From Paragordius varius (lineage: Eukaryota > Animalia > Nematomorpha), in contig OZ176055.1 of assembly GCA_964247055.1 (NCBI GenBank), forward strand, positions 124,001-188,000: a DNA stretch of 64,000 nt. The letters are read 5' to 3'. This document shows, one piece after another, positions 9,144 through 60,856 of this stretch. The notes beneath the pieces were generated by a model, which saw only the letters and a program-made list of their open reading frames with translations, was not told the DNA's origin and ran no database searches. How positions within the stretch are numbered: the first letter of the stretch is position 1; every line of letters starts with the position of its first letter. Both the position numbers and the translations under genes were made by a program.

Positions 9144-11390
9144 TTAAGGCAAAACTTTCAGGATTATAAGTTTTTTAATGCCATCCCGTTGTCCAATAGC
9201 TACGATAGTCCTATTATCTCGACTAATGCGAATGTTTAGGATTTCTGTTGAAGTTTCAAACGAACACAAATGGCTTCCGTCTTCAAAGTTCCAAAGGCGA
9301 ATCATTTTGTCGCTTGAACCGCTTGCTAACAATTTTCCGTCGCGCGATAAATCCAGGCAGGTTACCTATCATAAAGTATTAAATTAAATTAATGAAAAGG
9401 TTTTTTTGACTGCAAAAACTGGATGCTAAAACAAGAAATTCAAATTATCCAAAAGTAAAAGAACGGTGACCAAAGAATCAAGTTCATATATGTCGTTTTG
9501 CATTTATGTGTTACAAAACAATTTTTATTATAATATTTTTTACTATTTGATGGGTGTGCAAAAATAAATTCTATAAGGTTTTTGGTTGTTGAACACAAAA
9601 ACCAGTCTTGACGCTTATAAGCAATTGATAATTTATGGAAGAAAAATTCATTTTCACAGTCAGAATCTATGCATAAACGATCACCAAATTTAGGTCTATT
9701 TATAAAAAAAGGCACCATATTAAACCTTTCTGATATGGCATTAATTAAAATACAAGGTGATGCATAGAAATAACAAATTTTTATATACATCAGATTTATG
9801 GCCATGGAAAGTTAGTTTGTGAACGTATTCCCGATTTCCCAAATCTTGCCAAGATTTGATGGTCGTATCCTTGGAGGCGGAAACTAAATATCGCCCATCG
9901 TAGGAAGAGATGAGCGCTAAAACCGGTCCTAAATGGGCCGGGCTATTCGAGGACCCCGAACTCGATTCACGCAATTGACTTTGTTTTTTGCCTACGTAGT
10001 AAGAATAAAGAAAACCGATTTTAAGAAATTTAGTTAGATATATATATATATATAGAAAATATTAAAAAATTGGTGGAAAATGTGTGCAAGGTAGAATTCC
10101 AAACTCACTTTTAAACAGAGACAAATGTAAATGCTAAACTTAATTAGGCCTTAATAATTTGTCGATTTATGTCGCTTTTAAAGTCAAAAATTTCAAAATT
10201 ATGTGGATAATGCCGATATACCAGTATTGAGATTCCAAATGGTGATTTCACCACGTGGAGATCCGGTTGCTGTTCGGTCGGGATTGAGAACACAAACGCA
10301 ATCAGGACTCGTGACCGTACAGCTAAAAGCTTTAGAGTCTGTGTTTCCGCGTTTTATTTCTCCCAAATCGACAATAATTATATTACAAGTTCCTATATAA
10401 GATATATAAATATGTAGGATTATATATTAGAAAAATTAAAAATATTAACATATATGTATATAAAGGGCATAACAATGCCCAAAAGTTACTATATTATTTT
10501 TTCATATATAAAACTGAAAAAAATTTTGAAATTTTTAAATAAATATGGAGTCGAAAATATTTGTGAAATACTTTTAAACTATGTGTCTTACCTCCTAATG
10601 TAGGTTCATTGACTGAACCAATAGGATCGAAGAATCCAGCTAAGATAAAATTATCATCAGCTGATTTGCATAGGAACGATCGAACATTGCCAAGTCCAAA
10701 TGTTGGGGTGTAACTTAAACGTTTATCTACCACCCCTAAATACATTCAAAAAATATAGGTATAAAATATTCTTAATTTATTATGAATGATTAAAATTATG
10801 TTTCACATACCTCCATTCAAAACATCCATTAGCGTGACATTAACTTCATTATTTCCACTTTTGATTCCTTCATCAAAAGATGTTAAAACACCTGTTCGCC
10901 TGTCGTTTAGGAGGGTTAGAGCCGTGAAAATATCTTTACCATATGTCATGGTTTTAGTTCCTGAATCTATATCCCATGTCTATACAATATAGAAAAAAAA
11001 TTATATATCTGGCGTTTAAACTTTAATTTATATGTATGTAAAGTTTTATATTTTAGATATACCGTCAATTTTTTCTTGGGTATATGGTTGGGCGATGTAA
11101 TGGGTTCAGTCAGAGCCAGACCAACTAATGTCCGATTGTTGGGGCCGGCCAGGTAAAGATCTGATGATCCTTCTTCGCCTTCCAAGATCTTTGAAATTTG
11201 GCCCGTCTATCAGTGACACAAAAATAAATAAATATTGAATGTTAAACAATGTGTAAAAAGCATAGATAAAACAAGCCTGTCTCATCTCCTACCTCTAAAT
11301 TCCATATTTGAGGGGGGACAGTATCTGAACCCGTTATGACGCTAACGTTATCAGGTGTCACAATCAAACTTTCGATAGCCATGAGAGGAG
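9144..11390 (-). other. WD40 repeat region (7-8 blades) encoded by the last 7 exons of the LamG gene
   Basis: Recognisable repeats include IESLIVTPDNVSVITGSDTVPPQIWNLETG, TATGSPRGEITIWNLNTG, HLGPVLALISSYDGRYLVSASKDTTIKSW and [31 protein letters not shown]. Confidence 0.88.
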
Positions 11391-14300
11391 AGGTAGGGGT
11401 TAGGCCTAACGGCGTTGATCCCCTTAAACCGATCGGGCCACCACCCAGGAGATTGTGAGAAGATTCACCGGGAGGTGCTCTCATATTAAGTGTTGCGGCC
11501 CGAGGTGTTTCAATAAAGTATGGGGGAGATCCTCCTGTAAAATAAACAAAATTTATAACATAATTCTCAATATATATGTGTAAGTTTAAGTATTGATTTT
11601 ACCATCACTACGGTACTCTTCGTAGCGAGATGCTTCTTGATCTAAGCCGCGTGTAGTTTCTTTGTATCTAGGGTCTAACCTTTCTTCCCTCGTATTTCTG
11701 TTGAGTGTATTCATGTTCTGAAGTTGATAATCGTACCCAGTTCTTGATGGCGGTCTATAGGGCTCTTCCCGCGTTGATGGACCAATAAATGGGGCAGGTC
11801 CTGTAGCAATCAAAAATATATTTGCATCAATAAAAATCATCAATTGATTAAGTGGGTAGACTTTAGATTAAATTATATTACCTCCCCAATAACCTGGTCC
11901 ACGTGGGGCGTCTCGTCCGTATCGCACAACTCGAGTATATTCTTCCGTTTCTTTCTCAACTCTGGCAGGTTGTGTGGCAGAAGTGTGGGCTGTTTGTGTT
12001 GCCAACACACGCGGTTCTCTATCAATGGCTCGGGAAAGGGCTTGGACACTGGTTGAGGCTTCGTGTTGATCTCTACTGCGTGCAGCGTTACTGCTATCAA
12101 ACGTTTCACTCATGAGCGTGGATGTGGTCGTTCTGCCTTGAGTTCCACCAGTCCCAATCGCTGTAGACATGCCAGCAGTTGTCCCACCACCACTACTCCC
12201 GCCCTCCTTGATCATAAACTCTTCTTCTTCGCGTCGTCGGTGTCTTTGGACCTGACTGTACATTCCACCCCTTTGTTGTTGATCCACGACATCCATCACG
12301 CCTTGAGACACCATGGGTATGGGTCTATAATCACGAACCGCCCCGCCGGCTCCTTTACGACCCCAGGGGCCTACACACATACCAGGTTTGCATTTGTAAC
12401 AAGCCCAAAGCAGACCGGCAAGGAGTGGGAATAGAGCTGCAATGGCAGCTAGGACAGGCCCTAAAGCTCCGCCCATCAAATGACTCTTGACCGGGCGAAT
12501 GACATCATACGTGTTTTGTACTATCCCACCCGTGCCAGCTATAACTGGTGGCTCACCTATAATGGGTGGAGCCGTGGGTGGAGGGGGAGGCGGTACCCAC
12601 TCAGTAATGGGAATGGGTGGGAGCGGAGGTTCCGTTGGAGGCGGAATGGGTGAAGGGGACACACGATTTATGTTTAGCGGATAATAGATGAGATGGCCAC
12701 CTCGATCTATGAGTCCATGATGCATGCGGAAAAAGTCTCGGCTATTTATACGGATATCCCGCATGTACCCGGATAACCCGGGTAAGTAAGCATATTCTGG
12801 GATGCGTGTTTCAAATCCACCAAAATGCGCTTCATCCAAACACAGTGTAGCTCCTGCGCCAGCGCGATCAAATAGTTGTGCTATACGAATAATATGTTAA
12901 TGTTAGTTGTAATCAAAAGATAAACAATCAATCAATCAAAAAAATTTAATACAAGTAATGTGGGGATAATCATCCAGATAAACTGTAACATCATTGCCAT
13001 TGTGAACGACTTTGAGGTTGTGCCATTTCCCGTCATTGAGTTCGGACCCAATCAAAATATCCTATGAAATAAAAGATAAATTGCATTTATTTATTTAAAG
13101 GCCACCGAACAAAATTATAATTGAGATAAATTTTTTCGCATTTTATATTATAATTTAAATTTTATAATAGTAATAGGATTAGACAAGTGTATTATTTTAG
13201 ACACTTCAATTAATAAAGGTTTAAATATAATTGTTTTTAAAACAAAACTTTAAATTTATCTATTCAAGAGCATGAAATTATGGAACTTTTTTCGCATACG
13301 CAGCTTGCAGGATAATTTCAAAAATGACGCATATATTTATAGCGAATACCTTAAATTAAAAAATTTCACATACAATAATAGGGCTTAGGCATAGATATTC
13401 ATTTAAATAATATAAAATAATTTTTACTTAAATAATTACTTATCCTAATTAAATTACTTACTGTTTTACCTTATACTGTTCCCCGTCTCTCCCAATGATT
13501 TTAAGTACACCGTCCTCCAACAAGCCAACCAAATAGGTAGAATTACCATCTGTATCATCACAGGATATGGTGGCAAAAACTACGCCATTCTCATTTTTCG
13601 TATTGAATTTCATGCTGAATTCATTGCGCGTAAAATTGGGTTTAGGATGCGGGAATATGACTTTCATAAATTGATACCCATTGAAACTTAGATCAGGCAC
13701 TGATGCTAAAAAAGATATACAGAAAGATTAGTTTTAAAATTAAAAAAGTTTGAGATTTTTACAATTTTGTATTAAGTATAAAACTATTTACCTATTCTTA
13801 TGGGATAATAGACGGTATATGGGCTTCGTCTATTGTTTGCCCAGTCACATAAAATGTCGCTATTGTCTTGTCGATAATCTCTAATTTCCCCTTTGAAGGG
13901 AGCCACATTTTCGTCCGTAAAAGCGTCCGTATTATCGTAACCGAGGTAGGATTCCGAAATTTGGAGAGGCTTGAAACCAGGCACATCGTCATAATCTAAT
14001 GTTAATAAATATTAATGTAGTTTTTGAAACAAGTTGCATATTCAGTAATAAATTTAAATATTTCGGACCTAAAATGATCCTTTATCATTTAAACAATTAA
14101 AATGTAAATTTTTTTAAGATGCAACATTTAAAAAAATTAAATTTGATAAGTTATTACTTGTGCTGCGTTCTCTGTCATCCAGAATGAGTTCCAGCCCATG
14201 ACCCCTTTGATTTATTCGAACTTTATGCCATCTATTATCATTAAGGCCATTACCGACGGATAGAATCTATTTGATAGAAAATGGCATATAAGTGAAGGGT

Positions 14301-17300
14301 ATATTAAATTTAAAATTTTTGGGATATTAGAACATTTTCCTACCTTGTCTACTATACGGCCATTCTGATCTTTAAACCGGTATATGAGTTTAAGGGCTCC
14401 ATCATCCGCATTATCGAGGTAGAGTAATGCATTAGATTGGCTTTCTCGATCCTCGGATCCAGAAGTGCCATCTGTAGACGACAAAATGGCCGTTAGGCCA
14501 TCACGTGAATTCCGATCATCTGATCGGAAATGGAGTTCTAGGTCACGGTTACCAACTAAATTAGATTGCACATTAGCGGGATGAACAACCTATATAATAT
14601 GATAAAACTTATTTTAAAGATACATGAAAAATACAGTCGGACGAAACATAAAAAGTAAAAGACTAAATATCTATTTTTAAACAAAGCCTATTCGGATTTG
14701 AAAATAAATAGCGATTTAATTGGAATAGTGAATATACACAATTGTAATCATTTAGTTTCTATTCAAAATATAAAAGATTAGAAATATATGCTTTTCCTTA
14801 TTATAAAATTAAATGTTGACTTAACGTTATTTTCCCTGCATGGTTTTCATTTTATAAAATAAATATTAGCATTTTACTTTTTGTGTCTTGTCTTCATAAT
14901 TTTCTTACTGTTTAGTTTGTTGTATATCTTATAATATCAGCTAATGTGTTGTTTCTAAACATACTTTTACTGTTACGTCGCATATAATAAATACCAGACT
15001 TTAATTCGTGTGTTGTCTTTAAACGTATTTTAACTCTCTTACATAAATAAATGACAGTGTTTTAGTTTTATGCGTTGTTTTTTAATCCAAGTTTTTTAAC
15101 TATATGGTTTCTTTACATGAAATAAATATAAATATGTTTTCACTTTTCATGGTTTGTCTTTTATAAGGTTATATATTTTAATTCTATGGTTTTTTTCATA
15201 AATAAATGAAAATGTTTTAGTTTTTTGCGTTTTTTTGACCTCAAGTTTTACTATATGGTTTCTTTACATGAAATAAATACATATGTGTTTTCACTTTTCA
15301 TGGTTTGTCTTTTATAAGGTTATATATTTTCATTCTATGGTTTTTTTCATAAATAAATGAGTGTTTTAGTTTTTTGCGTTGTTTTTTAAGTATATAGTTT
15401 CTTTACATGAAATACGTATATGTGTTTTCACTTTTCATGGTTTGTCTTTTATAATGTAAAAAGTAAAAAGTAACCTTAGCATAAGTCTTTCCATCAAGCG
15501 CTATAAGGCAAGGCCGTGAAGGTGCGGGTGGTGCCTTGGTTTGTGGCGGTGGAGGAGGTGGGAGAGGAGGTCTTGTCATTGGCGGCGGTTGAGGATAATA
15601 CTTGGGAGGAGGTGGCGGTGGTGGTTGATAAATCACTTTTGGATAAGAATCTGAAAATATATTTTATAAAAGGATTAAGTCTGAATAAAAAGTTTGAGTG
15701 TTGAACATGAGACTTTATGGTTAATTCGAATTAGCATTAAAAAGTGTTGGTGTTTTTTTAAACAAGGATTAAGTCTGATTAAAAAGTGTTGAACTTGAGT
15801 TTGTGGTTTAATCGAGTTAGAATTACAATTTAGTGTACTTAGTTTTATTGCAAAAGGATTAAGTCTGAGTAAAAAGTGTTGAGTTGAACTTGAGTTTGTG
15901 GTTCATCTCGAATTAGAAAACAATTTAGTGTTGTTAGTTTTGTAAAACGATTAAGTCTGAATAAAAAGTGTGAGTTAAAGAACTTGAGTTTGTGGTTCAA
16001 TCACGAATTAGAATTAAAACTGTTAGTTTTGTTTTGAAAAAGGATCAAGTCTGAATAAAAAGTGTTGAGTGTTGAACTTAAGTTTGTGGTTTAATCCCGA
16101 ATTAGAATTAAAAAGTGTTAAGCTTTGAAAAAGTATATCTATATATTTTGTTTTAAAATTAAAAATCAAAACTTTAAAGAAAACTTTCTTACATGTTGGT
16201 GGCGGTGGTGGGGGAGGAGGTGGTCTAGTTGGCGGCGCATAATATTTTGGTTGATAAACTGGATCTAAAAGACATATCGTTAGAAAAAATAATCAATTAA
16301 TAAATCAGATAAAATATCATAAGGAAAAAAACCTAAAATGCAAAAATTTATAAATTGGATTGAAAACCCACGTGAATTTTACAAATGAATTAGATAAATA
16401 TACCAATTAAAATAAAGATCCCAAAAAGCGATTATTTTGTTTAATTAATTGGATCCACAACTTAATAATTTCATTAAATTAATTCATCAAATCAAAGCAA
16501 TATCCCAATTAAAAATCCTGCTATGCAAGCACAAAAGGCACATAATATTTTGGTTGTTATACTGGATCTAAAACACACAATATAAGTAATCAACCAATCC
16601 AACCAAATTAATTATCATATGAAAGATATTTAAACAATTATTCAATCAAATCAGAACAATATCCCAATTAGACATTAAAGCCCCAAAAAATCTTACATTG
16701 AGGTGGTGGGGGAGGAGGAGGCAAAGGTGCCGCTTTTTGTGGTGGCGGAGGAGGAGGTGGCGCATAAGTCATGCTTTTCATGGGCGGTTGTGGATATTGA
16801 TTGTAATGAGGAGCAGCAGGCGGTCTGGGTGGAGGGGGAGGTGGGGGCGGAGGAGCCCAAACTTTGACCCATTCGCTCGACAAGTCAATCCCATCACATT
16901 GTGGGTTCTTCAGCTGACCGATAAAGTGACCAGCTGATCGCCCGCCATAATATGGATTCTGTTGTTGCTGTTGTTGTTGCTGTAAACTGGAATCACTCGT
17001 GCCCACGAGGATTTGATAGATGGAAGGAATCATGTTCCCACCTGGGATGTAATGACTCTGCTTACTCCCATCAACTTTAAGGGTTATGCTTTGCCCATCT
17101 CGGGCCACTATAAGGTCATGCCAATTCCCATCATCGATACGGATATCAGAGTAGAGTGGCTAACACATATATGGAAGCAAATATTTTAATTTTAAAGACG
17201 TTTTTTTTCAAAAAAAAATTGGAAATAGCATTATTAAAAGGCAAAAATTTGTACCACGTCGCGGCCTTCATAAGAAATCAAAAGTTTAGGTCGACCGCCT

Positions 17301-20300
17301 TCAGCCTCTAAATTCATGCGAACAGGGGAGTTTGGTGATGATATCGATAAAATTCCCATATCAGGGCGATTGGTGCGTGTTTGCACGCGAACGATATTGT
17401 TGGAATATTGAAAGCCTTGCTTATCATCCGTGTATTTGTAATAATAATTCCCGTCCATATTAAAAATTTTATAGTGATGTCCTAACACATAACGCACAAA
17501 TTAAAATTTAAGTCCACATACACAGTAAAAATTGAAATTATACGTAAAAAAACGTAAAAACAATATATTTAAAAGACCACTATACTTTTTTAAACTTGTT
17601 TCCTTAAATAACTCATTATGTAAATTACAATGTTGGAAATAAAAATATAAATTGGTGAGACATTGAATTTGAGATTGTCATAAAGAAAAATAGGTTAAAG
17701 TGATATTTTGAAAAAATCTCTTTTACATTTTAACGTTAGGCCTGATAATTTCAAATTTTACTGTATTTTTCACTAAAAAATTTAAAGAAAAAAAAGATTA
17801 AATTAAATTACTTTTATCAACACTATTATCCACAACGGGTTGAGTTATGACGCGTGAGGAAGGGATAGGTGCCCTGCCATCCGCATTAATAAAGGGTAAG
17901 CCATTAACCATTAAATGTTGAATGGATCCCTGGAAATAAGCGGATTGTGGATAAGTATCTATCCCGCCCACTTGAATCGTTTCAATGGTCATTGGACGTG
18001 CAACGCTTGCATATTGCATTTCGGTCCCGTATATGTCTGCATCTACGAAAAAAACATATTTTGTAATGCATTACAAAGAATTTATGTAAAAACAAATCAT
18101 AAAAAGACTTGTTAAAGTATTAGAGGGCTTTAGACTAAAAAGACTTTTAAGTTTGTTATAATTTAGATTTCTACTGTAATTTATAATTTACTTTATGAAC
18201 GTATTAACATTTTTTTAATCAAATAGATATAGTAAAATAATCATTCAAATTATTGATTAAGAGTCTATACTTCTATAAACTTCATCATCTATTTGAACTT
18301 TAACGTTTTGTCCATCTTTGCGAAAATCAACTTGATGCCAGTTCCCATCGACATAACTGTTGCGTGAAGTGACAGACTAATTTTTTGAGAAAAAAACAAA
18401 ATGATTATATAAAATTTGCAAAATAAACTCCATAAAATAGGTTTAAATCTATATACATTAGTTTGGCCCGCATTAACGTAATTGACTTTAACGCGGCCGC
18501 CTTCCAGATAAATCTTGAGATTATCAGCCGAACTGCAATCTGCATACAAAACAACGCTGTCCCTATTATGCGTCGTTTTAAACCGTAAAGCAATCTCCGT
18601 AATGGTTGAAGTGAAATTGCTGGGCAATATTATTCGAACAACTTGATCTCCTTCAAGATTGAGTGTTGGGGCATCTGTTTTAATTTTATTAGAATAAAAT
18701 TAGGAATTTATAGAAAATTTCTAGGGAAAGTTACCTAAGAATATCCATACTAAACACAGATTAAAATATTGGTAATGTATAAGTTGGTTAATTTACCTTT
18801 CTCACATCGTTGGCCTGAATACGGGGTGCGTCCACAATCACAATAAGTCCTATTATAGCCTTCTTGACATAACCTATAAAAAATTTAATTAGATTTTTTT
18901 ATAAAATAAAAAAAAATCTAAAAAAAACTTATATTTTACCCATTATTGTAACAAGCCGTTCTACGACACCTAACTTTTGGAGCTTCGCACCGATCCACAC
19001 GATAAATTTTTATTGAATTTTCATCTGCATTCAGCATTGGACTTTCACTAAATTTGGGGGCTGTACTCATCCCTGAAATATATACAGTAAAAATTGAAAT
19101 TGTACAGACAAAACGTGTAAAACATAAAGACAAATATTCTTTTTAGATATATTTACTTGTATGACCATTAAATAAATTATTTAATTATAATTGTAAAATA
19201 CATAATTGATTGTGTTATCAATTTACATCTCTATTTTAATACAATGAGCTATATTAAATTTAAGTTGGAATAATATGGCGGTCTTTTGAATATTATTTGA
19301 CTATATATTTTAACATTTGTCTGTATGATCTAAATTTTTTCTGTTTATTTAAAAGATTATTTTCAGAAATAGAAAATAAAAATTTCTGAAATTTAACCGA
19401 TATATTAGCTAAATTTACCATCATTTATGGTGAGATCTTGTATGCATCCAATAAAACTGTTGGTTGAAAGTGTAGGCAAGTTAGATTTGGCCCTTGGGTT
19501 TCGCCCGCCTATCGTTATATCGCCATAAACGACATTGGATGAAGCCATGGTAGGGAGCGGGAAGGTTACAGGATTTTGTTCTCCGACCTGTACCGTAATA
19601 CCATGGTTTATGATCAATTCATATTTAAGCGATACCGGTTGCGACAACGGAAGAACATACAGTTCTGTTCTGTAAAGGTAGGACAGATAAAAATAAGTTT
19701 TATATATAGAGTTATAGTGAAATTTTAGAGTGTGTATAAAATCGCTAGTTTTTTTAAAAAAAAATTGCCAGCTAGCAAGCATACAAAGAAAATATTATCA
19801 GCTAAAACCGAAAAAATACAAAAAAAGTGTGACTTGACAATAACATGCAATTTTATACAATAAAATACTAGCCATCCATTATTTACTTAGTATACTTTAT
19901 ATAATACCTATAAGGAGTTAAACCGCCATCCACAGCGTACAAAAGGTAAAGACGATGACTAAATATTTCAATGCACACAGGTATGGAACTATCATCGTAA
20001 AGTACAATCCCACGCGGTTCATTTGTCATGAGTTTCATAGCTATCTTTCGGTAATTCGTGTATGTTTGTTGAGGGACCCTGTTTTGATTAGCTGTGTCTT
20101 GGCGTCGTACAGACTCCAAGAAATCTGAACTTAGTGTTAGATATGCGCCACCTTCTCGATGTACCTCATTGAAAGAATAGGAAACAGCAGCATTGTTTTG
20201 ATTATCGAAAGTCCCAGGATTAGAATTAGTATTGCTACCAACATCTAAAATTGCGGGTACATTGATATCCTGACGAGATAGGTATCTAAGTGTCCCAAAC

Positions 20301-23300
20301 ACTTGGACATCAGGCTCTCGGCGAATCAACATATCAACGGGGTAAAATTTTGTTTTTGTTGAATCTGCCGTTTCTTTCATTATAATGATCTAGATTCAAA
20401 ATATGGAGATTTTAATTATCATTCATGTAAAAGGCAAATATTTATCCTTTATTAAGAATATTAATTAAATACGGACAAAAGTTAAAACTATAAAGGCAAA
20501 TATTTTGTTTTAAAAGACCACCGCTATACATTTTTACTCTTATGGTTAAATTCGTAAAGGATGAAATAAAGATAAATATTGGTATGATAAATACCTATGT
20601 ATTTTACAATTGTAATTAACTCATTTATAGAGTAAAAATTTAGGTTTAAAAATATAATACGCACAATAAACCTCATAAAACGTGCCATTAAAGTATTCGG
20701 GGCGTGTAAGTGCCCTATCTAAGATAACTTGATTAGTTCCCCCAAAATCGAAATAAAACTCCTCTGAGCTTGTCGCGACACCGTCAGGTGACACGGTCAG
20801 GGGAGAAAAGTTTTTGGACATTTCCTTTTGCTGTACGTATTGATTGTCAACACTCAACATAATCTATAAATATATGCAAAAAAAAAATTATATTAAACCA
20901 AAAAATAAATTGTAATTTTTATATACAAAGTCATATATACCATTTACAATTCAAAATCACCCTTAAACAATTCAAATTCTCCCTCAAACAATTCAAATTC
21001 ACCCTGAAATAAAATTTATGTTTTTTAAGATTAAAAATTACCTATATTTTTAAACATTTTTAAAAAATAAAAAAATTTTGTTTTAAATTAAAATAGTATA
21101 CTGAAAAAATAATAAACTATGCCATAAAGATGTATTTCATATTAATAATAAGTTATATAAGTTCGAAAACACCTAATTTATTTTTAGGGTAAATTTGAAT
21201 TGTTTGAGGGTGAATTTGATTTGTGCAAGGGTGAATTTGAAATGTAAATGATATGTATCATTATAAATGGCATCATTACCGACCACAAAAAAATTATAAA
21301 GTTATAATTTTTTTGTTTTATACTAGTTTTGTTTTATTAAAACCGCATAAAATTTAGGTCAAAAATCGCATATATGTGTAATAAAAAAATTTTTATTGAC
21401 TAACCCTATTTGAAGTTTTTTTGACAATGATTTGATGTTTAGCGCCAGGAACAATTTCATACCCTGGGGGATAAATAATTTCAAGGCGATTTTGCTGTTT
21501 TCCAAATTCCGTATTTATGTAAAGTATTACATTACCTTCCTATCCAATTCAAATAAAAATTTATCAATTTATGGTAATCATATGCACAGTAGAAATTGAA
21601 ATTACACAGACAAATTGTAATAACATATAAAAATAAAAACAGTTTTTTTTTTCAAAATACTCTCATACTTTTTTAAACCTTGATTTTTTTCTCCATAAAC
21701 TATTTGAAATATATAATTATTGAGAGTGTTACCAATTTACTGTCTTTTACAATAAAATATATGTCCCTATGTTCATTTTGTCTGAATAATTTATATAAAA
21801 ATTCCCTAAAATTTATAAAAAAATATATAATTTAAATCATTTAATAAGCTAACTTCAAGTTTTAGAAACATATTTTCCATATCGCGACCAACGTAGAATA
21901 GGAAGCCATTCTTGACTTTGGTGTCGAAATCGAGGAAAATCTCAAAATCGTCCGCTAAAATTTTCGCATCGCGTGACGTGAATCGTATAAATCTGTATAT
22001 ACAAATGTCATTTAATAATTTTTAAAATATTTAAAATATATATTTTTAAAGTTATTATTGCTAAAATTTTATTTTCCTTAAATCTTAATTTATACTGGAA
22101 CATTAAAAATCAATTATTGATTTATTTTAATCAATATGTTCCCAGTGGGTGATTTTACTAATTTAGAGATGTAATGAAAATTAAAATAATAAATTAAATT
22201 ATAAGTATAAGATATTTAAAGTTCAATTTAAACTTCAAAATTTGAACTTTAACAAAAAATATGCAAAGTTTTAACCATATGTTAGCTATTAGTTAGAAAA
22301 ACATATTATTTATTAACTATTTTTTTTTCAATGTTAAAATACTTTAAAACAAGAAAATTGAATTAAATAAAAAATGAGATTCAAATACTTCATAATACTC
22401 AAAAAATTATGTAATATTCTCTGCATGATATTTTTCAATATAAATGGTTTTACAGTTTTTATAAAAATATTCATCCATATTGATTAGTGAGAATGTAAAA
22501 ATATACCCATTATTAATGAAACTTATTCGATAAGTATTTTGCGTTTTTCGAAGGGCATTGCGTGGATGGGCAGGAATTTCACCTATCATATAAAAAAAAT
22601 AAAAGCACGGATAAAAAATATAGAATAATGCACAAAAACTAGGTTCAAAATTATATCTTCTGACCGCTAAATAGAAAATGATATATTCAACCGTTTATTA
22701 ATGATTTTAATAAAAAAACAAGGGAGTTAAAAATAGTTTGAAAATTTATGACATTTTTGCCAAAAATTTAATTATCATTTAAACAAGTTTCTAAAATGTG
22801 TTTTTTATTAATCATATCACAGTTCGCAAATGCAGTTATAACTGTTTTCTAATAAGTAAAAATTTACACAGCTTAAAGAAATTAATTATATTACAAATAT
22901 AACTAGATTTTTTTGGGTATCTTTAGTAGGAATCACCTGATCGACCTCGAACCACATTGCCTCGGGAATCAATGATGGGAGGGGATCGGGTCGTCCGCAC
23001 CCTAACTGCGCCATCAGATGTTCCCCGATCAACAGCTGTGAATGTGACCGGATGTCTCGCGGCATCAGCTGATCCAATGACTTGAATATCGTGATGACTG
23101 GACCAGGAACCGGTCCCTTCCTGCGGTCCGCCATGGCCGACCCGCGTGCCAGCACCGCCATCATCCCCGCGGGCAGCCATTGAAGCTTGGAACGAATTGA
23201 ATCGCGAAGAACCAGCTGTTGTACTTCCTCTCCCAGCTGTTCGCTAAAATGAAAAAATGACACATGCTAAATTAGAGTTTAATTGAGAGGATATTTTACG

Positions 23301-26300
23301 GTATATTATTAATACAAATGTAGTAAAAAAAGCATTCCCCTAAATAACCATATAAAATTACAATTTTAAAATATACCATTTAAAATTTAAATTCACCTTA
23401 AAAATAGATTATGTATTTTCGGGCATATAACTTTTTTATAAACATAAAATTTTTTACGACATAGTTTATTATTCAGCATTATAAATATTAAACAGAATTT
23501 TTTTAAATATTAAAAAATAAAGGTTAATTTCAATCTTAAAAAAACACATAATTTATTTTTTGGGTGAATTTGAGTTGTTTGAGGGTGACTTTCAATTTTT
23601 CAAGGGTAAATTTGAGCAGTAAATGGTATACATAATTTAATATGTTAATAATTTCTAGAGTTATTATAAATGTCTTTTTCATTAAAATATTTGTCTTTTA
23701 GTTTTTAATTTTTACTGCCCTTTAATCCATGAACCTTAAAGACCCAGGACAAAATCGATTGAAAAGGTTTTCTTACAAAATTAATAACCATCATTAATCA
23801 TAAGCCAACATTCCGCTTACCTAAAATGGTTATGCCAAATTTTTTTGTAATATTTATAAGTCAAATGATTTGAATTTTGATTACATTTATAAAACTAATT
23901 CAATTTTGATAAATTGTAAATAAATACCAAACAATAATAACATATAAATAGGGAAATATGTGATTTTTTCTCCGAAATTATTGTTTTATAAATTAAGTAA
24001 AATTTTAAAAGTTTAACACAGCGTTAAATTAAAAATAAAAATTGTTTTTCAGTTTGAAAACCTTGTTTACACAAACTGTTTCTAACGAGTGAGTTATTTA
24101 AATTTTAAACCAGGTACCCTAACGAAATATGGAAAGAACAAATTTGAACGGTCAAAAATACCTGATTAATGGTTGATTGATGTTGGCTCCTATGTATTTG
24201 GTTGTGTTGTCTTTGAGCCTGATGAGCCAATAAGTAATGATGTTCATGTGTTAACAAATGTTCTCGGTTTTGTGTTACTAAAGATTGTTGTTCCTTATTC
24301 AGATGATGCGGTGATGATAACAAAAAAGCATTTTTGAGCAATAATTGCATTTGAGGGACTTTAATGTGTCCGCGTTGGACACCATTAACAAAAAGGGACA
24401 ATCCTTCGGCCGGCTTAAACTGAAGTTTAATTTGATACCAAAGGCCAGGCGTAAAGCCTGTAGCTGATAGGGTCCACGTCGTTTTATGTAGCAAAGAGTT
24501 AGTGGGAGCATCAATCGTATTCTGATTATTTTCAATGTTTCGATTATAATCTGTATTCCTTCCAATGGATATGCTAAGGACGCCATGAACGTACACAATT
24601 TTAACATACGGGTACCGACCTTTGAGTAAATCCGCCCCTCGTCCCAAATCAAAATCGTGGCCTAAATCACCCCGACCACCCTCATGTTGCTGAATGCTAG
24701 TTGAAGTTTTATTGGGTTGTCGAATAATCCACGAGAATTCGAGTCTCATGTTTCGATCGCAATGACTTAAATCGCTCCAACACGGGAGCGTTAGGGCATC
24801 CGAAGTATCGGCAATCAAGATTTCATAGTTGTTGGAGTAGGGGCTGGCCTCAAACGCAGACTCTTCTGTAAATGTTACAAATATTTTATTTTTGAATAAA
24901 ACGAAATCAAAATTATTTATTAATTAACATATGGTTAAATTTTTAAACTTAAAAATTCAGAGCCTAACTCTAGTGTTGGGTTGTTTAACCAGTCAAAAAA
25001 CCATCGCTTATGGTCATTCTCAGTCAAAACTAGTAAACTAAACCACGATTGCAAATATATCTATACTTATATATGATAAAATATAAATTTTTATAGGAAA
25101 AACATTGACTGGTTATTTTCTAAAGCGATCATAGTGATAAATGATTTATAACCTAACCAATCCAACCCTACCTTAGTCTAAAACAATTTTTTCCTGAAAT
25201 ATCAAAACAATGTAAATTGATTTGTCAGTCCTCTTAGATAATTTACTTTTTATAAAAATTAATTCTTTTGGTGGTAAAAAAATTAAAAGGCGGCTAGCTC
25301 TTTTATTATTATTTGTAGAAAAGTTTTTTTGTTCAAAAATATAAACTACGAAATATCTTTTAACCAACCAACCACACATTGTATTTCATTATTTTTATTA
25401 TAGTTGCAATAAAATGTATATATGTATGTATATAAATAAAAATAATATTTATATATCTTTTAACCTTGTGCCATTTCAAAGCGATTAATGTAAATTTTTT
25501 TTATTATTATATTATCGAATTGAATTGAATAAAAAAAATTATGTATATATAGCATGTAATGTAAAATAATGATAAAATTTGCATGTTTTTTTGAAAATTA
25601 TTGCGCAGTTAAAACGTATATTTATATTATCGTAAATTGGTTGTGATTAGTTATTATCTATAAACATTTTATAAATATAGAAATATATATTTTAAATTCA
25701 GATTTTTCTAGAAAAATAAATAATTTTATTCAATATTTGAAATTGTCAAACCCTAAAACCTTAAAAAATATTAACAAATAACTAAAAGAAAATATTTAAA
25801 ATTGTTCCAACAGGTATCTTTGACTTAGAATTTCCATCGGACTTTAAATTTATATATGGTAAAACATCAATGTAGAATAATTTTTTTATAAAAATAACAC
25901 AAATTATAAATGCTAAAATATCAATCCATCTATAATAAAATAAAAAAATATAAAATGCAACAATGGTAATTTATGTATGTAATAATAATTATTAATACAA
26001 ATTGGCTTTATAAAGGAATAATAGCAATTGTCCAAATATTTACTTATTGTCATTGCTTATTATAATTAAAGATATAACATGAGTCCGACACATGTCACCT
26101 CAGAAAAATAAAGAGTTTTTATAATTTTTTCTATTTTTATAAAATTATTATTTAAATAAATATAAAACCAAGCATATTTTGGGGTTATCATACTATTTGC
26201 TCACCTATAAATCCAATATTAAAAATTATTATAATAATTTTATTAATAATATAAAGCGACAAAAAGTAAATAGAAAAGGAAATAATCCCTCTTTTTTGTA

Positions 26301-27591
26301 AAATTATTATATATTATTAGAAAAAAAGGGTGTTGAAAATTTTTTGTTAAATATAAATATTATACAATGTTAATAATTGACGACAAAGTTCATGTCAATA
26401 TTTACCATTAATTTTTATTTTTTTTATTAGAAAAATGACATATAAAAATGCTTTAAAATATATTATATAAATATTTATTATTAATCCGCTATAACGGAGA
26501 TGATTATATGGAAAGCAAGGGATATTTATGCACAATAAAAGCTCCTTGTTGAAAAAATAACCACAAAAATAAAACAAGATAAATGACAATAAAATCGATA
26601 ATTAAGCCATATTTTGACAGCGATGTTAAAATTATAATAATATAAATATTTAGTCATTATTTAAGTATCAAGAAAATTAGTATATAGCTATTTAAGTTTC
26701 TAAGAGCGAATTGGAAGAATTATCATGGCTAAAATCAGTATAGTTAATTTATAAAAAATTAAAAAATATATAAGAATTATATAATATTTTAATCTGTTTA
26801 TAAGATTTGTCATATTTTGTAATTACTGATATGGTCACATATTATATTTAAGGATACAAAGCAAAATATACTAAAATATATTTCAATATCGTCCATGTCT
26901 TTTCTTTTAACAACTTTTGTTTTGTGAAATTTATTAAAAAATTAAGCTGGAATGCGTATATTATAAAAATATATATTATTTTAATATTAGACTTTTATAG
27001 TAAAGTCTTTATCGAAAAAATCATCAAATAATTTAGATTAGTTTAAGCTAATATTTTTATAAATTAGGCTTTATAAATTTCCAGGGATTAAAATATTTTG
27101 ATTGCAAATGATATATTGAAAGGGTTGATTCTAAATATTCCTTGCTTAAATAACATTTGTTTCTATCATCAGACATAAATTTTTTTAGGGTTGACTCATG
27201 GTTGTCTAAATATTTCAAGTGAAAAACAAAAACAAAAAAAGAGATAATTAAAATAAAACGCAATAGAAATTCCGATTTTTGAGTCTAGGACAAAACTCAA
27301 AGGTGTTTTATTGAGATTTCCAAAAAAATACTCCCGAAAAAAATAATCAAAAATTCGTATTATAAAAAAAATAAAGAAAATCGAAAAAAACTAATTTATA
27401 TAATAAATATAATTCTCTTTAAATGTAATAATGCAGTTGGGCACACTTTTATTTTAGATTTTTCTCAACTGTAATATACTTGGGGTTATAAATGTTGCAG
27501 TTTGACGTTGAAGAATATTTGAAGGATTTATAGCATTTAAGGGGGATATCACACAACAACATAATAATAATAGCAAGTAATAACTCATCAT
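9144..27591 (-). CDS. Neurexin-like LamG/EGF type-I membrane protein with a cytoplasmic WD40 beta-propeller (about 2,500 aa, 32 exons)
   Basis: Exons in transcript order: 27591-27480, 24865-24162, 23243-22937, 22582-22507, 21992-21854, 21539-21405, 20863-20672, 20389-19908, 19669-19419, 19072-18940, 18873-18797, 18674-18457, 18376-18271, 18042-17812, 17481-17255, 17159-16697, 16264-16193, 15650-15475, 14589-14344, 14266-14158, 13995-13792, 13705-13470, 13061-12953, 12880-11882, 11800-11603, 11534-11293, 11206-11063, 10979-10811, 10735-10592, 10392-10222, 9991-9789, 9365-9144 (TAA). All junctions are GT-AG and phase-compatible; the sum is 7497 nt. LamG motifs: DGNWHQV, DDGNWHDL, NDNRWHKV, NDGKWHNL, FIGCIQDL, SGYMRDIRIN. 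EGF: CRRTACYNNGLCQEGYNRTYCDCGRTPYSGQRCE. The first exon (signal peptide MMSYYLLLLLCCCVISPLNA) is the least certain join. Confidence 0.85.
12399..12467 (-). other. Single transmembrane helix of the LamG-WD40 protein
   Basis: ALGPVLAAIAALFPLLAGLLWAC follows a Pro-rich stalk. It is followed by a basic, Cys-rich juxtamembrane segment (YKCKPGMCVGPWGRK), consistent with positive-inside type-I topology and possible palmitoylation. Confidence 0.85.
15036..15455. repeat. Intronic tandem repeat, ~140-150-bp unit, about 3 copies
   Basis: CTTTACATGAAATA...GTTTTCACTTTTCATGGTTTGTCTTTTATAA recurs at 15111, 15262 and 15401. Confidence 0.85.
15668..16130. repeat. Intronic tandem repeat, ~93-bp unit, 5 copies
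   Basis: AAGGATTAAGTCTGAATAAAAAG recurs at about 15669, 15764, 15855, 15947 and 16040. Confidence 0.88.
17523..17763. mobile_element. Family A MITE, LamG-gene intron
   Basis: Both TIRs are present. It fills 241 of the 330 nt of the intron. Confidence 0.8.
19085..19343. mobile_element. Family A MITE, LamG-gene intron
   Basis: Both TIRs are present. It ends about 10 nt from the acceptor AG at 19074-19073. Confidence 0.78.
20938..21252. mobile_element. Family B foldback-like element (TIRs built of 21-bp subrepeats)
   Basis: TACCATTTACAATTCAAA...(AACAATTCAAATTCACCCTTG)n arms in inverted orientation around a conserved AT-rich core. Confidence 0.8.
23374..23628. mobile_element. Family B foldback-like element
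   Basis: Same termini (TACCATTT...AAATGGTA) and core. Confidence 0.75.
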
Positions 27592-29483
27592 TCTTAAATC
27601 AAAGTAATAATAATTAGAGATCCGATGCTTAGTTTTGGAATTTTCATCATAAGGACAGGGGGACTTTTTACAAAGGCCAGCATATGCTTTTTTCTTGACC
27701 CTTTCAATTTTCCCCGTGGGCGTTTGATGTGAAGAATATTGATGGTGTAATTCACTCATTTTGCGCGGCGTTTTGCAAAAATCTGCGCTTTCAAATCCAA
27801 AGTTAGGTCTTATTTTCGATACTACCTTGCCTTGATTAGGGAATAATCAAAATTTCGATGTATGGATATTTGTATTAACTTCATTGGGATATATCTCTTG
27901 AAATATTGATGATTTTAGCTGTAAAATATAATTAAACTGTGCAGTTATAGTGAGGAATATTGAATAATTGTTCAAAACGCTTTTACTAAATAGGGTTATT
28001 CTCAATTACTATTTCATTTAGTTGTAGTTGGTAATAAAAAAAACTTCAACTCTGCACTTTTAAAGTAAGAGAATGGAAGGGGGTTTCGATTTCAGTTTTT
28101 TTTCCAGTGTATATAAGTGCGCGCGGAAAACTAAAAAACTGTGAGTTTAATACAGCGTTATTTTGTGTGAAAAGAAAGCTGGGAATGAAAATCTTAAAAT
28201 ATCGATCAGATTGAATTGCGTAGAAAGATTTTTTCACAAAAATAAGGCAGCAGAAATAATGATTGATTGCAATCAATAATATAAGTTCTGCGCTCTAAAG
28301 GTATACAAAATTGTGTATAGTTTCTAATTAAAAAAATTTTTTTTTTCGTAAAGTAGTTTGCCAGTTAGTTTTTACAAGATAATTACTACTTACTTAAGAT
28401 ATTTCTCGATAAAATAAAATGTTCGATTTGAAAATAGTAGTATAAATGAAGATGGAATAAATATTTAGAAATGCAAAGATTTTGCGGATTTATAAATAAC
28501 GTCAGTTGTTTTTAATTCTCTGCAAAAAATTACATAAATTTAAAATTAAATTTTTGTGATGTACGCAAAAGCACAAACTGGCCATTTATCATTATTTATT
28601 TCGTTTTTAAAATAAAATTTATTTAAAATGTATTATTCTATATCTTATTGTTTATTATTGGATTTTTTTCGGAAATGTGGAATTTGCAATTTGCAATAAT
28701 AATAATATTTTTTTTTTAAATAAATGATATAATTTTTGCAGATTTTTTATAATTTAAATATAAATATTTTATTCATATATACAACATACATGTGTATACA
28801 CGCGAAAAACGTAGTATAAAAGCGATAATAAAATAAAATAATTGGAAAATGTAATATAAATATATATAATATATAAAATCACATGGCAATAGGCTTTTTT
28901 AAAGGTTATAACTATAATTATATTATAAAAAAACCATTTTTTTAATCAAATAAGATTGGATTAGGGAATAAAATAGATTTTGTGCGGGTGATTTCAAAAG
29001 ATAAAATCCGACGTGGATTAAATGATTTTAGTATATGGGAATAATATGTAAAATATTAGAAAATTTGTTTAACAATCCCAAATGCAATAGTGGTTTAAAC
29101 AAGTTCAAGTTTATTTAATGATAAAAAAGTAGTTTTTGAAAGTTACAACATATAGTTAAACTAATAATATATTTGAATATTAAATTTTTGCAATGGACAA
29201 AAATATTTACAGGTAAAATAATATATTAAGTATAAAAGAGGTTTTTCCAAAAAAAATAGAAACATTGTAAAGGGAAAACAAAACAAAACGAAAATTATAG
29301 TATAAAAATAAAATAAAATATTTTACAGGTGAAAAAACGCTTAAGCTTTTATAGGTAAAAACGAAAAAAAATGCTCTCCTCGCAGAGTATTTTGAACACT
29401 AAAGTTTTTACATTGCACATAATAGTATATAATTAATTTAGCCACACATAAATACTTATTAAGCAAAATATTTGACCCTTATA

Positions 29484-51194: not shown

Positions 51195-56656
<5,462 letters not shown>

Positions 56657-57221: not shown

Positions 57222-60200
57222 TTATGAAATTGATTCAAAGTATTCCAACGCTTTGCGTGAAAATAAAAGCTTAGCTTCCTTTAAATTTCCGTCCGTATTT
57301 TCTTGAGGCGAGGTTTGAACGATTTGTTGAACAATTCCTTCAATATTATTTGGTCTAAAGCATAATTTTTTTTGGAAAAAAACCTTAAAATATTTTTTAC
57401 AAATACAGTAAAACTTGAAATTATACGGACGGACAAAACGTAAAAATATAAAGACAAATATTTTTTCAAAATACATAACACCATACTTTTAAAATCTTGA
57501 TTGTTTTCAATAATACTCATTGTTTTATACTCCAAAGTATTGTATAGAGATGTATATTGGTAATAAAATCAACAATTTTACCATTGTTAATAAATGATTT
57601 TAAAAGGATAATTCAAGGTTTAAAAATGTATGCTTTTCTTTTCGAAAATATTTTTAATCTTTTTTATATTCCTACGTTTTGTCCGTATAATTTCATTTTT
57701 TACTGTAATACTAATTTGAACAAACCGAATTTTTGTTAGGCTTAGCAATTCTGCATTAGAAGCAATCATAAAAGGACTAAAACCATCTGTTTGTCCAGCC
57801 ACCGAACTTCGTAACGCCAATAGTTTTTGATAAATTTTGACTTTATCCGTGTTGGTATGAGAAAAGACATTATTATCAGAATTGCTATTTGAATTATTAT
57901 TAATGTTTGTGCTTTCGTTATTAATGAAACTTTTTTCAGTGTTCAGATTTTCCTCTAAAAAATATATATATACCATTTACAGTTCAAATTCAGCCTTGAA
58001 CAATTCAAATTCACACTAGAACAATTCAAATTCACCCTTGAACAATTCAAATTCACCCTTGAACAATTCAAATTCACCCTTGAACAATTCAAATTCACCC
58101 TCGAACAATTCAAATTCACCCTAAAAATAAATTATGTGTTTTCGAACTAATATAAATCATTATTTATATAAAATATATTAAGGCATAATTCATTATTTTT
58201 CAGTATTATTTTAATTTAAAACAAAATTTTATATTTTAAAAATATATTAAAATATAAGTAATTTTTGATTTTAAAAAACATGTTATTTATTTGAGGGTGA
58301 ATTTGAATTGTTCGAGGGTGAATTTGAATTGTTCAAGGGTGAATTCGAATCGTAGGGTGAATTTGAATTGTTTAAGGGTGAATTTGAACTCTAAATGGTA
58401 TATTTATAGTATAGATAAATATTTTAAGGACAAAATGTGAAAATTAAAGACAAATATCATGTTAAAAAGACACCACCATATTATTAATTAAAAATTCATT
58501 TTTTAAAAATAACTCTCGTTGTTTTAAACTGCAAAGTATCAAATAGAAATTGGTAACAAAATTAATGATATATTTTACAATTATAAATAGCTCAAATAGG
58601 GAAAATCAAGATTTTAAAAAAGTATATAAGTCTCTTTTGAGATAAAATTTTTATCTTTATATTTTTACGTTTTGCCCCGTACAATTTCAATGTTTACTTA
58701 TTTATCAAGAAACCTTACTACAATATCATCTATGGTAAAACTATATAAATTTACTCATATTTTTTTCCGTTTGTACATTAACAGCTGTTGATATGGTTTT
58801 AGATGCGGTAGACAACTCTTTCAAACAGGCCTGGGTAAAGAATGATCGTTTAATAAACAGTGTAGGGGTTGAATTTTCAGCATTATGATTTGTTACTGAT
58901 GATAACCAATTTACACCCTTTGGACTAATTTGAAGCGTGGATCCATAATATTTGGGAATTTTGGCGTTCTTTACATACTTTTCCACAATATATTCCTCCT
59001 CGATTAATGCTTTAGCTAAGTAAGATACAGTAAAAATTGAAATTATAAGGACAAAACGCATTATTATATAAAGACATTTTTTTTTTCAGAAAATCGCTGA
59101 ATATTTTATAAATTTATTTTTTTTGAATAAAACTCATTTTTGCAAATTGTAAAGTATAAAATAGAGATATACATTGGTAAAACAATCAATTATGTATTTA
59201 ATTGTATTATATACTTTATCTAAGAAACATCAAGTTTCAACGAACTATGGTCACCTTTCGACAAAAAAATTGTGTTTGATTTTTGCGTTTTGTCCGTATA
59301 ATTTCAATTATTGCTTTAAAAATAAAGATGCTAAAATTCGCACAACTACCTTAGATATATAAGTGCTAAAAACATTGCTGTATAAAAATTTTTACCTGGT
59401 GATTAATCAAAATCGGTATTAGTAAAATAAATTTTATTTTAATAAAAAAACCTAATTCTTTCCACCAGTGCTCTGTATAGGATTGACCTTTGCCAAAATA
59501 AACGCTTTTTTTATGCCACGGACGTAATCTTTTGTTTTGAGAACCCCTGAGAATCAGAATTATACTTGAAAGTCCATATAAACCGCGTAATTCCCTCACG
59601 GTAGAAAGAAAAACATGAGTTTGTGGACCCACATTCAATTCATTAGAATTAAAAGCTTCCCCATTTTTTTCTAAAAACAACAACAGTGAATTGAAAATAT
59701 AATGACAAAACATAAATATATAAGGACAAATATTTTTTCTAAAAGACAATCCCAGACTTTTTAAATCAGGTTTGGTTAAAAATTTAAGACATTGTTTTCT
59801 GCAAAGTATAAAATAGCAATGTAAATTCGTAATACTAAATTATCGATTTTACCAATTTTAACGATTTAGATCATTACATAAAAATAAGATTACCAAAGTA
59901 TAGATGGTGACTTTATAAAATAAAATTTTTTGTCATTTTATCAAATTTAAATCCTTACTGTAATCCTTTGCTGGTATTAAAGTTTGACTGCTGGAATCAA
60001 ACATTAGTTTTGAGGGTATATTCAAACTCTTCTGTATTTTACTTTGCCATTCACCATCATTTATATGTTGAGTTTGATTTTGGGAATTGGTATTTAAAGG
60101 GTCATTTTCGTTTTTTTCATGTGGAATATTTTGTGTGACAGTCGTCGCCATACTTTTTAACCGTTTTTCCATACGTCTACCATCATAAATATGATTTAAT

Positions 60201-60801
60201 TTTTTTGACATAAGAATCAGTAAAACAAAAAATAGAGTTTAAAAACGTAAAAATTCATTGATTTGTTTAAAAAAGTGATTAAAATTAAAAGGTAATGAAA
60301 ATTGGATAACTTGATATTTTAAGCCAAATTTATCTTAAACAACTAAATAATTTAATATACCTAATAGAATTACCAATCAAAAAAAATAATTTCTTTCTTG
60401 AACAAGCAAAACCTAATATTACCAATTTGATTAAATAAATTTGATATACCCAAAAGAATTACCAATTCAAAAAATTTTCTTTCATAAATTACAAATAAAA
60501 CCTAATTTTACCAATTTTTTAAAATAATTGAAAAATGATTTTTTAATCAAAATTGTTAATCAATCTTAACTTAATTTTCGAGCAATTATCACAACAGCTA
60601 TATAACATTGGTTGAAACGTATCAGAGTTAGTAGTTTGTTGCTCTTCAGAATTAACATTAGGCGCCATAAAATAGGATAATAAAAACTGCCTTCGACATT
60701 CCACCTCTAAATTACAATAAGCTTCTATGGCTTTCACCATTTTGATTTGTTGATTAATGACTGCTTGTCGCGATTTTAATTGACCATTTGCTGCAAAATT
60801 T
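57222..60801 (-). CDS. WRN: WRN-like RecQ helicase, C-terminal part (Zn-binding, RQC winged helix, HRDC); helicase core not in the window
   Basis: Exons 60801-60571, 60176-59959, 59670-59452, 59015-58755, 57954-57726, 57354-57222 (TAA), all phase-compatible. Motifs: CRRQFLLSYF...CCDNC; VGPQTHVFLSTVRELRGLYGLSSIILILRGSQNKRL...FGKGQSYTEHWWKEL (close to the WRN RQC); IYQKLLALRSSVA...FMIASNAELLSLTKIRP (HRDC). Confidence 0.85.
57406..57705. mobile_element. Family A MITE, WRN intron
   Basis: TA|CAGT...ACTG|TA. It fills 300 of the 371 nt of the intron. Confidence 0.85.
57971..58400. mobile_element. Family B foldback-like element, WRN intron
   Basis: About 7 subrepeats on the left and about 4 on the right; flanked by TA runs. 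Confidence 0.85.
58425..58700. mobile_element. Family A MITE, WRN intron
   Basis: Inner TIR parts at both ends, adjacent to a family B element. Confidence 0.7.
59028..59312. mobile_element. Family A MITE, WRN intron
   Basis: The left TIR is intact and lies about 10 nt from the acceptor AG at 59017-59016. Confidence 0.78.
60290..60530. repeat. Intronic ~90-bp tandem repeat, 2-3 copies
   Basis: GAATTACCAAT and ACCTAAT..TACCAATTT recur at a ~90-nt offset. Confidence 0.6.
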
Positions 60802-60856
60802 CTAATGCATAAAGAAAATAAAAATTTTCCATCAATTAATTTCAATTCCAAGTATA

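Follow-up and report, generated by a model that had tools for sequence, protein, structure and literature searches.

A predicted PHRED-1-type receptor gene joining LamG domains to a cytoplasmic WD40 region in the horsehair worm Paragordius varius

Neurexins comprise three LamG–EGF–LamG cassettes and a short tail whose C-terminus binds PDZ domains. Crumbs, the CASPR proteins, and Fat-type receptors rely on short tails that bind FERM or PDZ domains, or on cadherin or discoidin modules, and we know of none among them with a cytoplasmic WD40 domain. The closest described system to the gene treated here is PHRED-1 (Pharynx regeneration defective-1) of the planarian Schmidtea mediterranea—a protein of 2,536 residues with a signal peptide, six LamG domains, nine EGF modules, a transmembrane (TM) helix, and three intracellular WD40 repeats as recognized by SMART (Adler & Sánchez Alvarado 2017, bioRxiv 10.1101/131789). 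The present text concerns a stretch of 64,000 nucleotides (nt) from the horsehair worm Paragordius varius (assembly GCA_964247055.1, contig OZ176055.1, positions 124,001 to 188,000 of the forward strand), which is called the window as a whole and whose own numbering is used throughout. Its minus strand, from position 27591 to 9144, very probably carries a single gene for a PHRED-1-type type I receptor with a fused WD40 region, acting by the mechanism that is proposed further below.

PHRED-1 is documented by a cDNA clone, by 5′ rapid amplification of cDNA ends that reached an 8-kb transcript, and by an antibody and a western blot that agrees with the predicted mass of 298 kDa (bioRxiv 10.1101/131789). 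The 100-residue antigen peptide spans a generic LamG boundary and is too unspecific to tell orthology from general LamG similarity. The protein is expressed in muscle, and RNA interference against it leads to disorganized, thickened muscle fibers (Adler & Sánchez Alvarado 2017, bioRxiv 10.1101/131789). Its ectodomain resembles neurexin, and the authors set the family apart from neurexin, Crumbs, and Notch; homologs that share its domain combination were reported from lophotrochozoans only (flatworms, Lottia, Octopus, and Capitella), the two C-terminal WD40 repeats being their most conserved part (bioRxiv 10.1101/131789). An earlier note on this window, made from the sequence, knew of no characterized protein with this architecture and held that the family might be unstudied. 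The published PHRED-1 refutes this, and the mention of similar flatworm proteins in the same note is correct. What is new here is the occurrence of the LamG/TM/WD40 architecture in a horsehair worm, outside Lophotrochozoa; the architecture itself was already published.

The exon chain of the gene was built by a splice-aware dynamic programme, which scores codon log-odds and GT/AG sites. Its doubtful first exons were swapped for a signal-peptide exon at 27591–27480, whose phase-1 donor CAA/GTATAT (the slash marks the exon end) fits the acceptor at 24865. The resulting model runs from an ATG at 27591 to a stop codon at 9146–9144 as one open frame of 32 exons on the minus strand, with a coding sequence of 7,482 nt for 2,493 residues and the terminal stop as its only one. 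All 31 introns have GT–AG ends, and the mean GC content amounts to 45% in the exons and 21% in the introns. The window itself is AT-rich (21–40% GC in 2-kb bins), and GC-richer open segments are strung along the minus strand from 27.6 to 9.1 kb. Hereby, the uninterrupted exon chain proposed before from 27591 to 9144 is recovered with the same ends and the same architecture. The length of 2,498 residues given with it differs slightly, the gap being confined to the poorly constrained Pro-rich micro-exons. The features of the gene are the following:

9144–27591, minus strand: whole coding region, from the exon chain, with 62% identity to Gordionus isoform X2 over 2,302 aligned residues and tblastn exon matches
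27480–27591, minus strand: exon 1, start codon and predicted signal peptide (hydrophobic residues 1–24), phase-1 donor CAA/GTATAT
22937–24865, minus strand: exons 2–3, N-terminal extracellular domain of about 335 residues without a Pfam match, 37–51% identity to Gordionus
19065–21928, minus strand: LamG1 and LamG2 (residues 422–558 and 676–802), Pfam on the ortholog, mapped at 68% and 61% identity
18810–18968, minus strand: EGF-like module (residues 835–865) in two exons, six-Cys pattern, 71% identity to Gordionus
16893–18582, minus strand: LamG3 and LamG4 (residues 901–1025 and 1089–1219), Pfam on the ortholog, mapped to the window
15511–16847, minus strand: Pro/Tyr/Gln-rich spacer between LamG4 and LamG5 (about residues 1235–1350), from the exon model, without a Pfam match
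12741–14430, minus strand: LamG5 and LamG6 (residues 1416–1524 and 1582–1710), Pfam on the ortholog, mapped to the window
12399–12473, minus strand: predicted single TM helix (residues 1800–1824), Kyte-Doolittle maximum 2.35, nearly identical in Gordionus
11882–12398, minus strand: first part of the predicted cytoplasmic tail, within exon 24, with motifs common to both genera, ending at the donor GAG/GTAATA
11801–11881, minus strand: predicted in-frame intron of 81 nt with a TAA at 11870–11868, GT...AG, 23% GC; Gordionus lacks these 27 codons
11603–11800, minus strand: exon 25, the linker, 198 nt, phase 1 at both ends, 70% identity to Gordionus
11535–11602, minus strand: predicted intron of 68 nt before the first WD40-bearing exon, GTAAAA...TTACAG, 18% GC
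9144–11534, minus strand: exons 26–32, end of the tail and WD40-type region (residues from about 2111 to 2493) to the stop, Pfam WD40 and repeat model, 62–97% identity to Gordionus

Some parts of this model are less well defined than others. An upstream in-frame ATG at 27759 (27592–27759, minus strand), 168 nt before the start at 27591, would place 56 further hydrophilic residues ahead of the signal sequence, and both N-termini known from Gordionus carry 20–30 residues ahead of the hydrophobic segment; hence, the true start is uncertain. Exon 3 (22937–23243, minus strand) has a GC content of 58%, compared with the gene mean of 45%, and holds two open frames. Its frame-2 reading was rejected, as the Gordionus protein aligns in frame 1 only. 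About 35 of its residues are missing in Gordionus, which suggests that this GC-rich stretch might be a species-specific insertion in the N-terminal domain. The micro-exon boundaries in the Pro-rich spacer at 15511–16847 are the least certain part of the exon model. The spacer comprises several micro-exons, and a comparable Pro/Gln/Tyr-rich stretch stands at the same position in Gordionus—the feature is kept, the sequence is not.

The ortholog referred to above was found with phmmer, the query being 342 residues at and around exon 24 and the database comprising 1.84 billion representative proteins. A word-index search with the 323-residue tail exon, restricted to candidates of 0.55–1.75 times the query length, gave no match. 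The only phmmer match is a Gordionus protein of 2,393 residues, aligned with 61% identity over its residues 1577–1918 and continuing for 475 further residues toward the C-terminus. It is isoform X2 of an uncharacterized protein from Gordionus sp. m RMFG-2023, whose locus LOC135929791 has the records XP_065322578/79/80 and CAK9303629, the identical sequence being present under both submitter and RefSeq accessions. Gordionus belongs to Nematomorpha, within Ecdysozoa, and its genome (26.9% GC, a base composition that the window matches) was annotated by RNA-seq-guided BRAKER. The window model aligns with isoform X2 over nearly the full length, and LOC135929791 is a clear ortholog with shared domain order and a shared tail-to-WD40 junction. 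Isoform X1 differs in its first exon only. Compared with the Paragordius varius protein, the Gordionus protein lacks the insertions that exon 3 and the tail carry in the window model, and it comes with an alternative first exon and a linker-skipping isoform. A tblastn search of the Gordionus protein on the window found nearly all exons, the exceptions being the signal-peptide exon and two Pro-rich micro-exons. Exon by exon, identity is lowest in the signal-peptide exon (19%) and a Pro-rich micro-exon (33%) and highest in the last exon, whose 97% also describes the last 73 residues of the two proteins. Conservation is higher inside the cell (70% in the linker and 62–97% per exon in exons 26–32) than outside (mostly 50–80%).

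For the domain assignment, Pfam was run on the full-length Gordionus ortholog and on pieces of it and then mapped to the window, since the introns split the domains and scans of single exons across the LamG region therefore remained mostly blank; a direct LamG match in exon 19405–19782 is weak. On the ortholog, six Laminin_G_2 domains are found at residues 389–517, 624–742, 838–955, 1020–1147, 1332–1438, and 1496–1622, with E-values of 3.9e-11, 1.5e-10, 2.2e-15, 4.1e-12, 4.3e-08, and 2.2e-18 from LamG1 to LamG6. One EGF-like module with a six-Cys pattern lies between LamG2 and LamG3; on the ortholog (residues 772–802) the Pfam EGF profile scores 18.4 bits, under its cut-off of 21.5. The LamG and EGF modules of the window model share 57–74% identity with those of Gordionus. 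Pfam recognizes no family in the first 340 Gordionus residues, in the Pro-rich spacer, or in residues 1690–2270.

On the Kyte-Doolittle scale only two hydrophobic segments appear, the signal peptide at residues 1–24 and the TM helix at about residues 1800–1824, and basic residues (KCKPG...RKG) directly follow the helix. Hence, the WD40 part lies on the cytoplasmic side, and the product is predicted to be a type I membrane receptor with a LamG/EGF ectodomain and a cytoplasmic WD40-type region. The entire cytoplasmic region measures about 670 residues and ends with ...ILKVLP after the WD40 repeats. Its tail spans about 285 residues between the TM helix and the first WD-like repeat and contains blocks conserved between the two genera: GMYSQVQR..RR.EEEEFMI.EGG, VEKETEEYT.VVRYGRD, GYDYQ, NTLNR, RYEE, and SPPYFIETPR.

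The WD40 profile PF00400 exceeds its Pfam cut-off in the last two exons of the window model (3.1e-09 and 3.2e-06), and in the Gordionus ortholog two WD40 repeats and several propeller-family profiles are recognized from about residue 2199 to the end. A hidden Markov model built from 2,892 repeats of generic WD40 proteins detects four repeats in each species—in the window model at residues 2115–2146, which sit inside exon 11534–11293, and at 2337–2354, 2372–2401, and 2414–2453. The roughly 190 residues between the detected repeats hold three further strand ends of the W-D/N type at fitting spacing, without a match to this repeat model, and structures in the PDB as well as generic WD40 proteins align to the last ~160–180 residues only. 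Spacing and W-D/N motifs fit seven blades, and the WD40-type region would probably form a seven-bladed propeller that is closed by its last strands. A MAFFT alignment that set the exon peptides of the window against the Gordionus propeller was discarded, as it stacked the repeats on each other. Much of the domain plan in the earlier note is recovered: the six LamG domains and the EGF module by Pfam on the ortholog, the single TM helix by the hydrophobicity scan, and the beginning of the WD40 part inside exon 11534–11293 by the repeat match at residues 2115–2146. Its tail of about 290 residues is close in length to that found here and is more than low-complexity sequence, as long motifs are conserved between the genera. 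As to its seven to eight WD40 repeats, four are detected statistically, and the remaining blades are plausible from spacing and W-D/N motifs only.

Neurexin-1 is the nearest named kind in a feature search of the ESM Atlas, with weak scores of 0.72–0.75; the Atlas searches overall returned neurexin-like and LamG_3+WD40 clusters at scores of 0.72–0.76, which serve as leads only. With the alpha-neurexins, the predicted Paragordius varius receptor shares its type I topology and an ectodomain in which EGF is interspersed among six LamG (LNS) domains. In contrast to neurexins, it has a single EGF module and a cytoplasmic region of ~670 residues that ends in WD40 repeats. The neurexin clusters of the Atlas carry a Syndecan-type tail domain of Pfam, and no Syndecan-type match is present on the Gordionus ortholog. 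A neurexin identity was hence rejected—there is one EGF module and not three cassettes, no Syndecan-type match, and no short PDZ-binding tail. With Crumbs, the CASPR/contactin-associated proteins, and Fat-type receptors the protein has in common an ectodomain of LamG and EGF modules and a single membrane pass.

The DNA data support the continuity of the region in which the receptor part meets the WD40 part. Logan contigs from independent DNA runs span 11453–11957 without a gap; hence, this junction is not an assembly join. The runs also contain haplotype variants, about 250 in number, of which the best-supported 40 are listed. Placed on the gene model, 24 of the 30 exonic ones among them are synonymous, at third positions. 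In the exons downstream of the in-intron stop, this holds for 12 of 13 listed variants, the exception exchanging Ser for Thr, and the one variant listed for the linker exon is synonymous as well. Such a synonymous excess is the signature of a translated frame.

Several points weigh against reading the locus as one PHRED-1-type gene. The small RNA runs of the species contain no match to the stretch, and the runs that do match are all DNA, with contigs that run through introns. The synonymous excess stems from the listed subset of variants. The Gordionus proteins are computed models; NCBI Gnomon normally issues additional isoforms only with transcript support. Four of the seven proposed blades are detectable by sequence, and a single-sequence AlphaFold2 model of the Gordionus C-terminus is all-beta and, with a mean pLDDT (predicted local distance difference test) of 36, unusable. 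The tail-exon search found Gordionus only and no PHRED-1 family protein, which leaves architecture as the ground for orthology, and a search with the noncanonical blades (Gordionus residues 1975–2262) returned generic WD40 proteins only. Among the 120 of 440 matches listed for Gordionus residues 1880–2393, bacterial multi-repeat WD40 proteins predominate.

At the junction itself, these points bear on whether one gene or two are present. Exon 24 (12880–11882), which encodes the last part of LamG6 together with a proline-rich stalk, the TM helix, and the larger share of the tail, ends at the donor GAG/GTAATA (11882/11881), and the next acceptor, CTACAG/G, lies at 11801/11800. The 81 nt in between (11881–11801) are in frame and contain a TAA at 11870–11868, 11 nt past the donor—the source of an ending ...WGGNII followed by the stop. 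With the TAA in frame and 81 a multiple of three, the unspliced reading is a legal end of an open reading frame, and one might propose two adjacent genes: a LamG receptor that terminates at the TAA at 11868, and a soluble WD40 protein with its own promoter or trans-spliced at 11800 within an operon. Downstream in-frame ATGs, found near 11838 as well as within the linker and exon 26, would offer starts for the latter, and the RNA runs without a match to the stretch are in line with such a proposal. We nevertheless regard two genes as very improbable. From the stop to the acceptor there are only 68 nt, with no AATAAA or ATTAAA anywhere from the TAA to 11535, and the 81-nt segment resembles an intron in its low GC content (23%) and its strong GT and AG ends. 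Gordionus isoform X2 reads straight through the junction (...RGPGYWGG-PAPFI...), its gap matching the 27 codons of the intron exactly. Conservation of the linker amounts to 70% and does not extend to the methionines: in Gordionus, Ile stands in place of its sole Met (QNMNT), and Ser in place of the Met in LNMRAPP just after it. There is hence no conserved independent start ahead of the WD40 coding region. In Gordionus isoform X3, the first WD40 exon follows the tail exon immediately (...GPGYWGG-SPPYFIETP...), with exactly the linker segment missing, and the fusion in PHRED-1 has been verified as a single transcript and protein (bioRxiv 10.1101/131789). The phase-compatible introns claimed before at 11882/11800 and 11603/11534 thus agree with the splice sites and the Gordionus gap, and the WD40 part is, as claimed, without a separate start. 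It is highly probable that the LamG receptor and the WD40 region make up a single fused gene, and the stop after ...WGGNII would be spliced out within a normal 81-nt intron in Paragordius varius. A gene of this kind might also make both forms, by regulated retention of the 81-nt intron: a receptor without WD40 repeats that ends in ...WGGNII, the full-length protein, and a third form that skips the linker. An in-frame intron with a stop 11 nt past its donor would suit an on/off switch of the cytoplasmic module, and the linker exon is symmetric (198 nt, phase 1 at both ends), such that its skipping keeps the frame. As isoform X3 of Gordionus lacks exactly this segment, the linker behaves as a cassette exon, and it is probably a conserved one that alters how far the tail motifs lie from the WD40 region. 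However, no termination at the equivalent stop is seen in any of the three isoforms of Gordionus, and in AT-rich DNA chance alone produces short in-frame introns with stops—of the 31 introns, about 11 have a length divisible by three. The production of all these forms is therefore considered improbable.

A fused gene could also have arisen apart from PHRED-1. Each of the two proteins is one polypeptide of ~2,500 residues with a signal peptide, six LamG domains, an EGF-like part, one TM helix, and an intracellular WD40 part at the C-terminus, where conservation is highest in both. They differ in the EGF modules, nine in PHRED-1 and one, with a sub-cut-off Pfam score, in Paragordius varius, and in the Pro/Tyr-rich spacer and the unnamed N-terminal domain of the latter. 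They differ as well in their range, that reported for PHRED-1 being lophotrochozoan and the present gene coming from Nematomorpha, an ecdysozoan group. The gene is assigned to the PHRED-1-type receptors by its architecture. Convergent domain shuffling would instead have joined a LamG receptor and WD40 repeats independently in nematomorphs or ecdysozoans. For this speak the differing EGF count, the restriction of LamG+EGF+WD40 proteins to lophotrochozoans as seen by the PHRED-1 authors (bioRxiv 10.1101/131789), the lack of any lophotrochozoan protein in the searches with the tail exon and the noncanonical blades, and a tail and an N-terminal domain without detectable relatives beyond Gordionus. 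A shared plan of this detail—six LamG domains, ~2,500 residues, a single TM helix, and an extreme C-terminus that is the most conserved part and holds canonical WD40 repeats—argues against convergence. The searches were also limited in their reach: the phmmer query was the fast-evolving tail, and the word-index search needs shared 5-mers and lists 120 of 440 matches to the canonical WD40 repeats. Moreover, no nematomorph genomes were at hand in 2017. On balance, an independent origin is considered less likely than not, and true orthology to PHRED-1 is considered fairly likely.

The DNA runs further show two haplotypes of the region. Contigs of the second haplotype skip 416 nt (9367–9784), 74 nt (11213–11288), and 112 nt (14657–14770); the first two of these skips are intronic in the gene model, and the third lies inside the 885-nt intron 15474–14590. 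The haplotypes thus seem to share exons, with intron sequence that is replaced or strongly diverged. At 9448–9646, the word depth reaches ~9,160 in run X3 (organism B), compared with <10 elsewhere. This bin lies inside the 423-nt intron 9788–9366, which also holds an open reading frame (ORF) of 121 residues (9440–9805, minus strand), and it is probably a high-copy repeat common to the data set of another organism.

Beyond the gene, the window contains further coding candidates. On the plus strand, 62157–63443 is an ORF of 428 residues with EF-hand-like loops (DKDKDGSISAKE, DVDKSGSIDFEE, and DADGDGFIDRDE) that are split by acidic, Ser-rich low-complexity sequence; it is probably part of an EF-hand calcium-binding protein gene, which would extend past the ORF. 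ORF pieces at 57620–60887 on the minus strand resemble, by eye only, the C-terminal part of a RecQ-type helicase. One piece has a Cys-rich CRR..LL.YF...CCDNC motif of zinc-binding-like appearance, another an HRDC-like segment. A 279-residue, Asn/Ser/Lys-rich low-complexity ORF at 55817–56656 (plus strand), in an AT-rich region, may be an exon of a neighboring gene or a chance ORF.

LamG domains bind extracellular matrix or cell-surface ligands in laminins, agrin, and neurexins, and the LamG array of the Paragordius varius receptor might bind a ligand of this kind. Inside the cell, the propeller and the tail motifs would recruit cytoskeletal or signaling partners directly, without a PDZ or FERM adaptor, and it is reasonable to see the protein as a receptor with a cytoplasmic scaffold of its own. 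By analogy with PHRED-1, it would most likely act in muscle and aid the organization of myofibrils. The cytoplasmic module might be tuned or removed when the linker exon is skipped, and possibly when the stop-bearing intron is retained. The high conservation of the cytoplasmic region—of the tail motifs, the cassette linker, and the last exon with its 97% identity—points to a specific binding partner.

The finding extends the occurrence of a neurexin-like receptor with a built-in WD40 scaffold beyond Lophotrochozoa; so far, such receptors have been studied in planarians only, and the Gordionus ortholog already stands in RefSeq as an uncharacterized protein. We lean toward a history in which the PHRED-1 family was present in the protostome ancestor, was kept in Nematomorpha, and was lost in the model ecdysozoans (nematodes and arthropods), with the near-invariant C-terminus marking a conserved partner. 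If the orthology to PHRED-1 is true, the origin of the family goes back at least to the protostome ancestor, and its absence from flies and nematodes would reflect loss. Such a loss would explain why this type of receptor has escaped genetic study.

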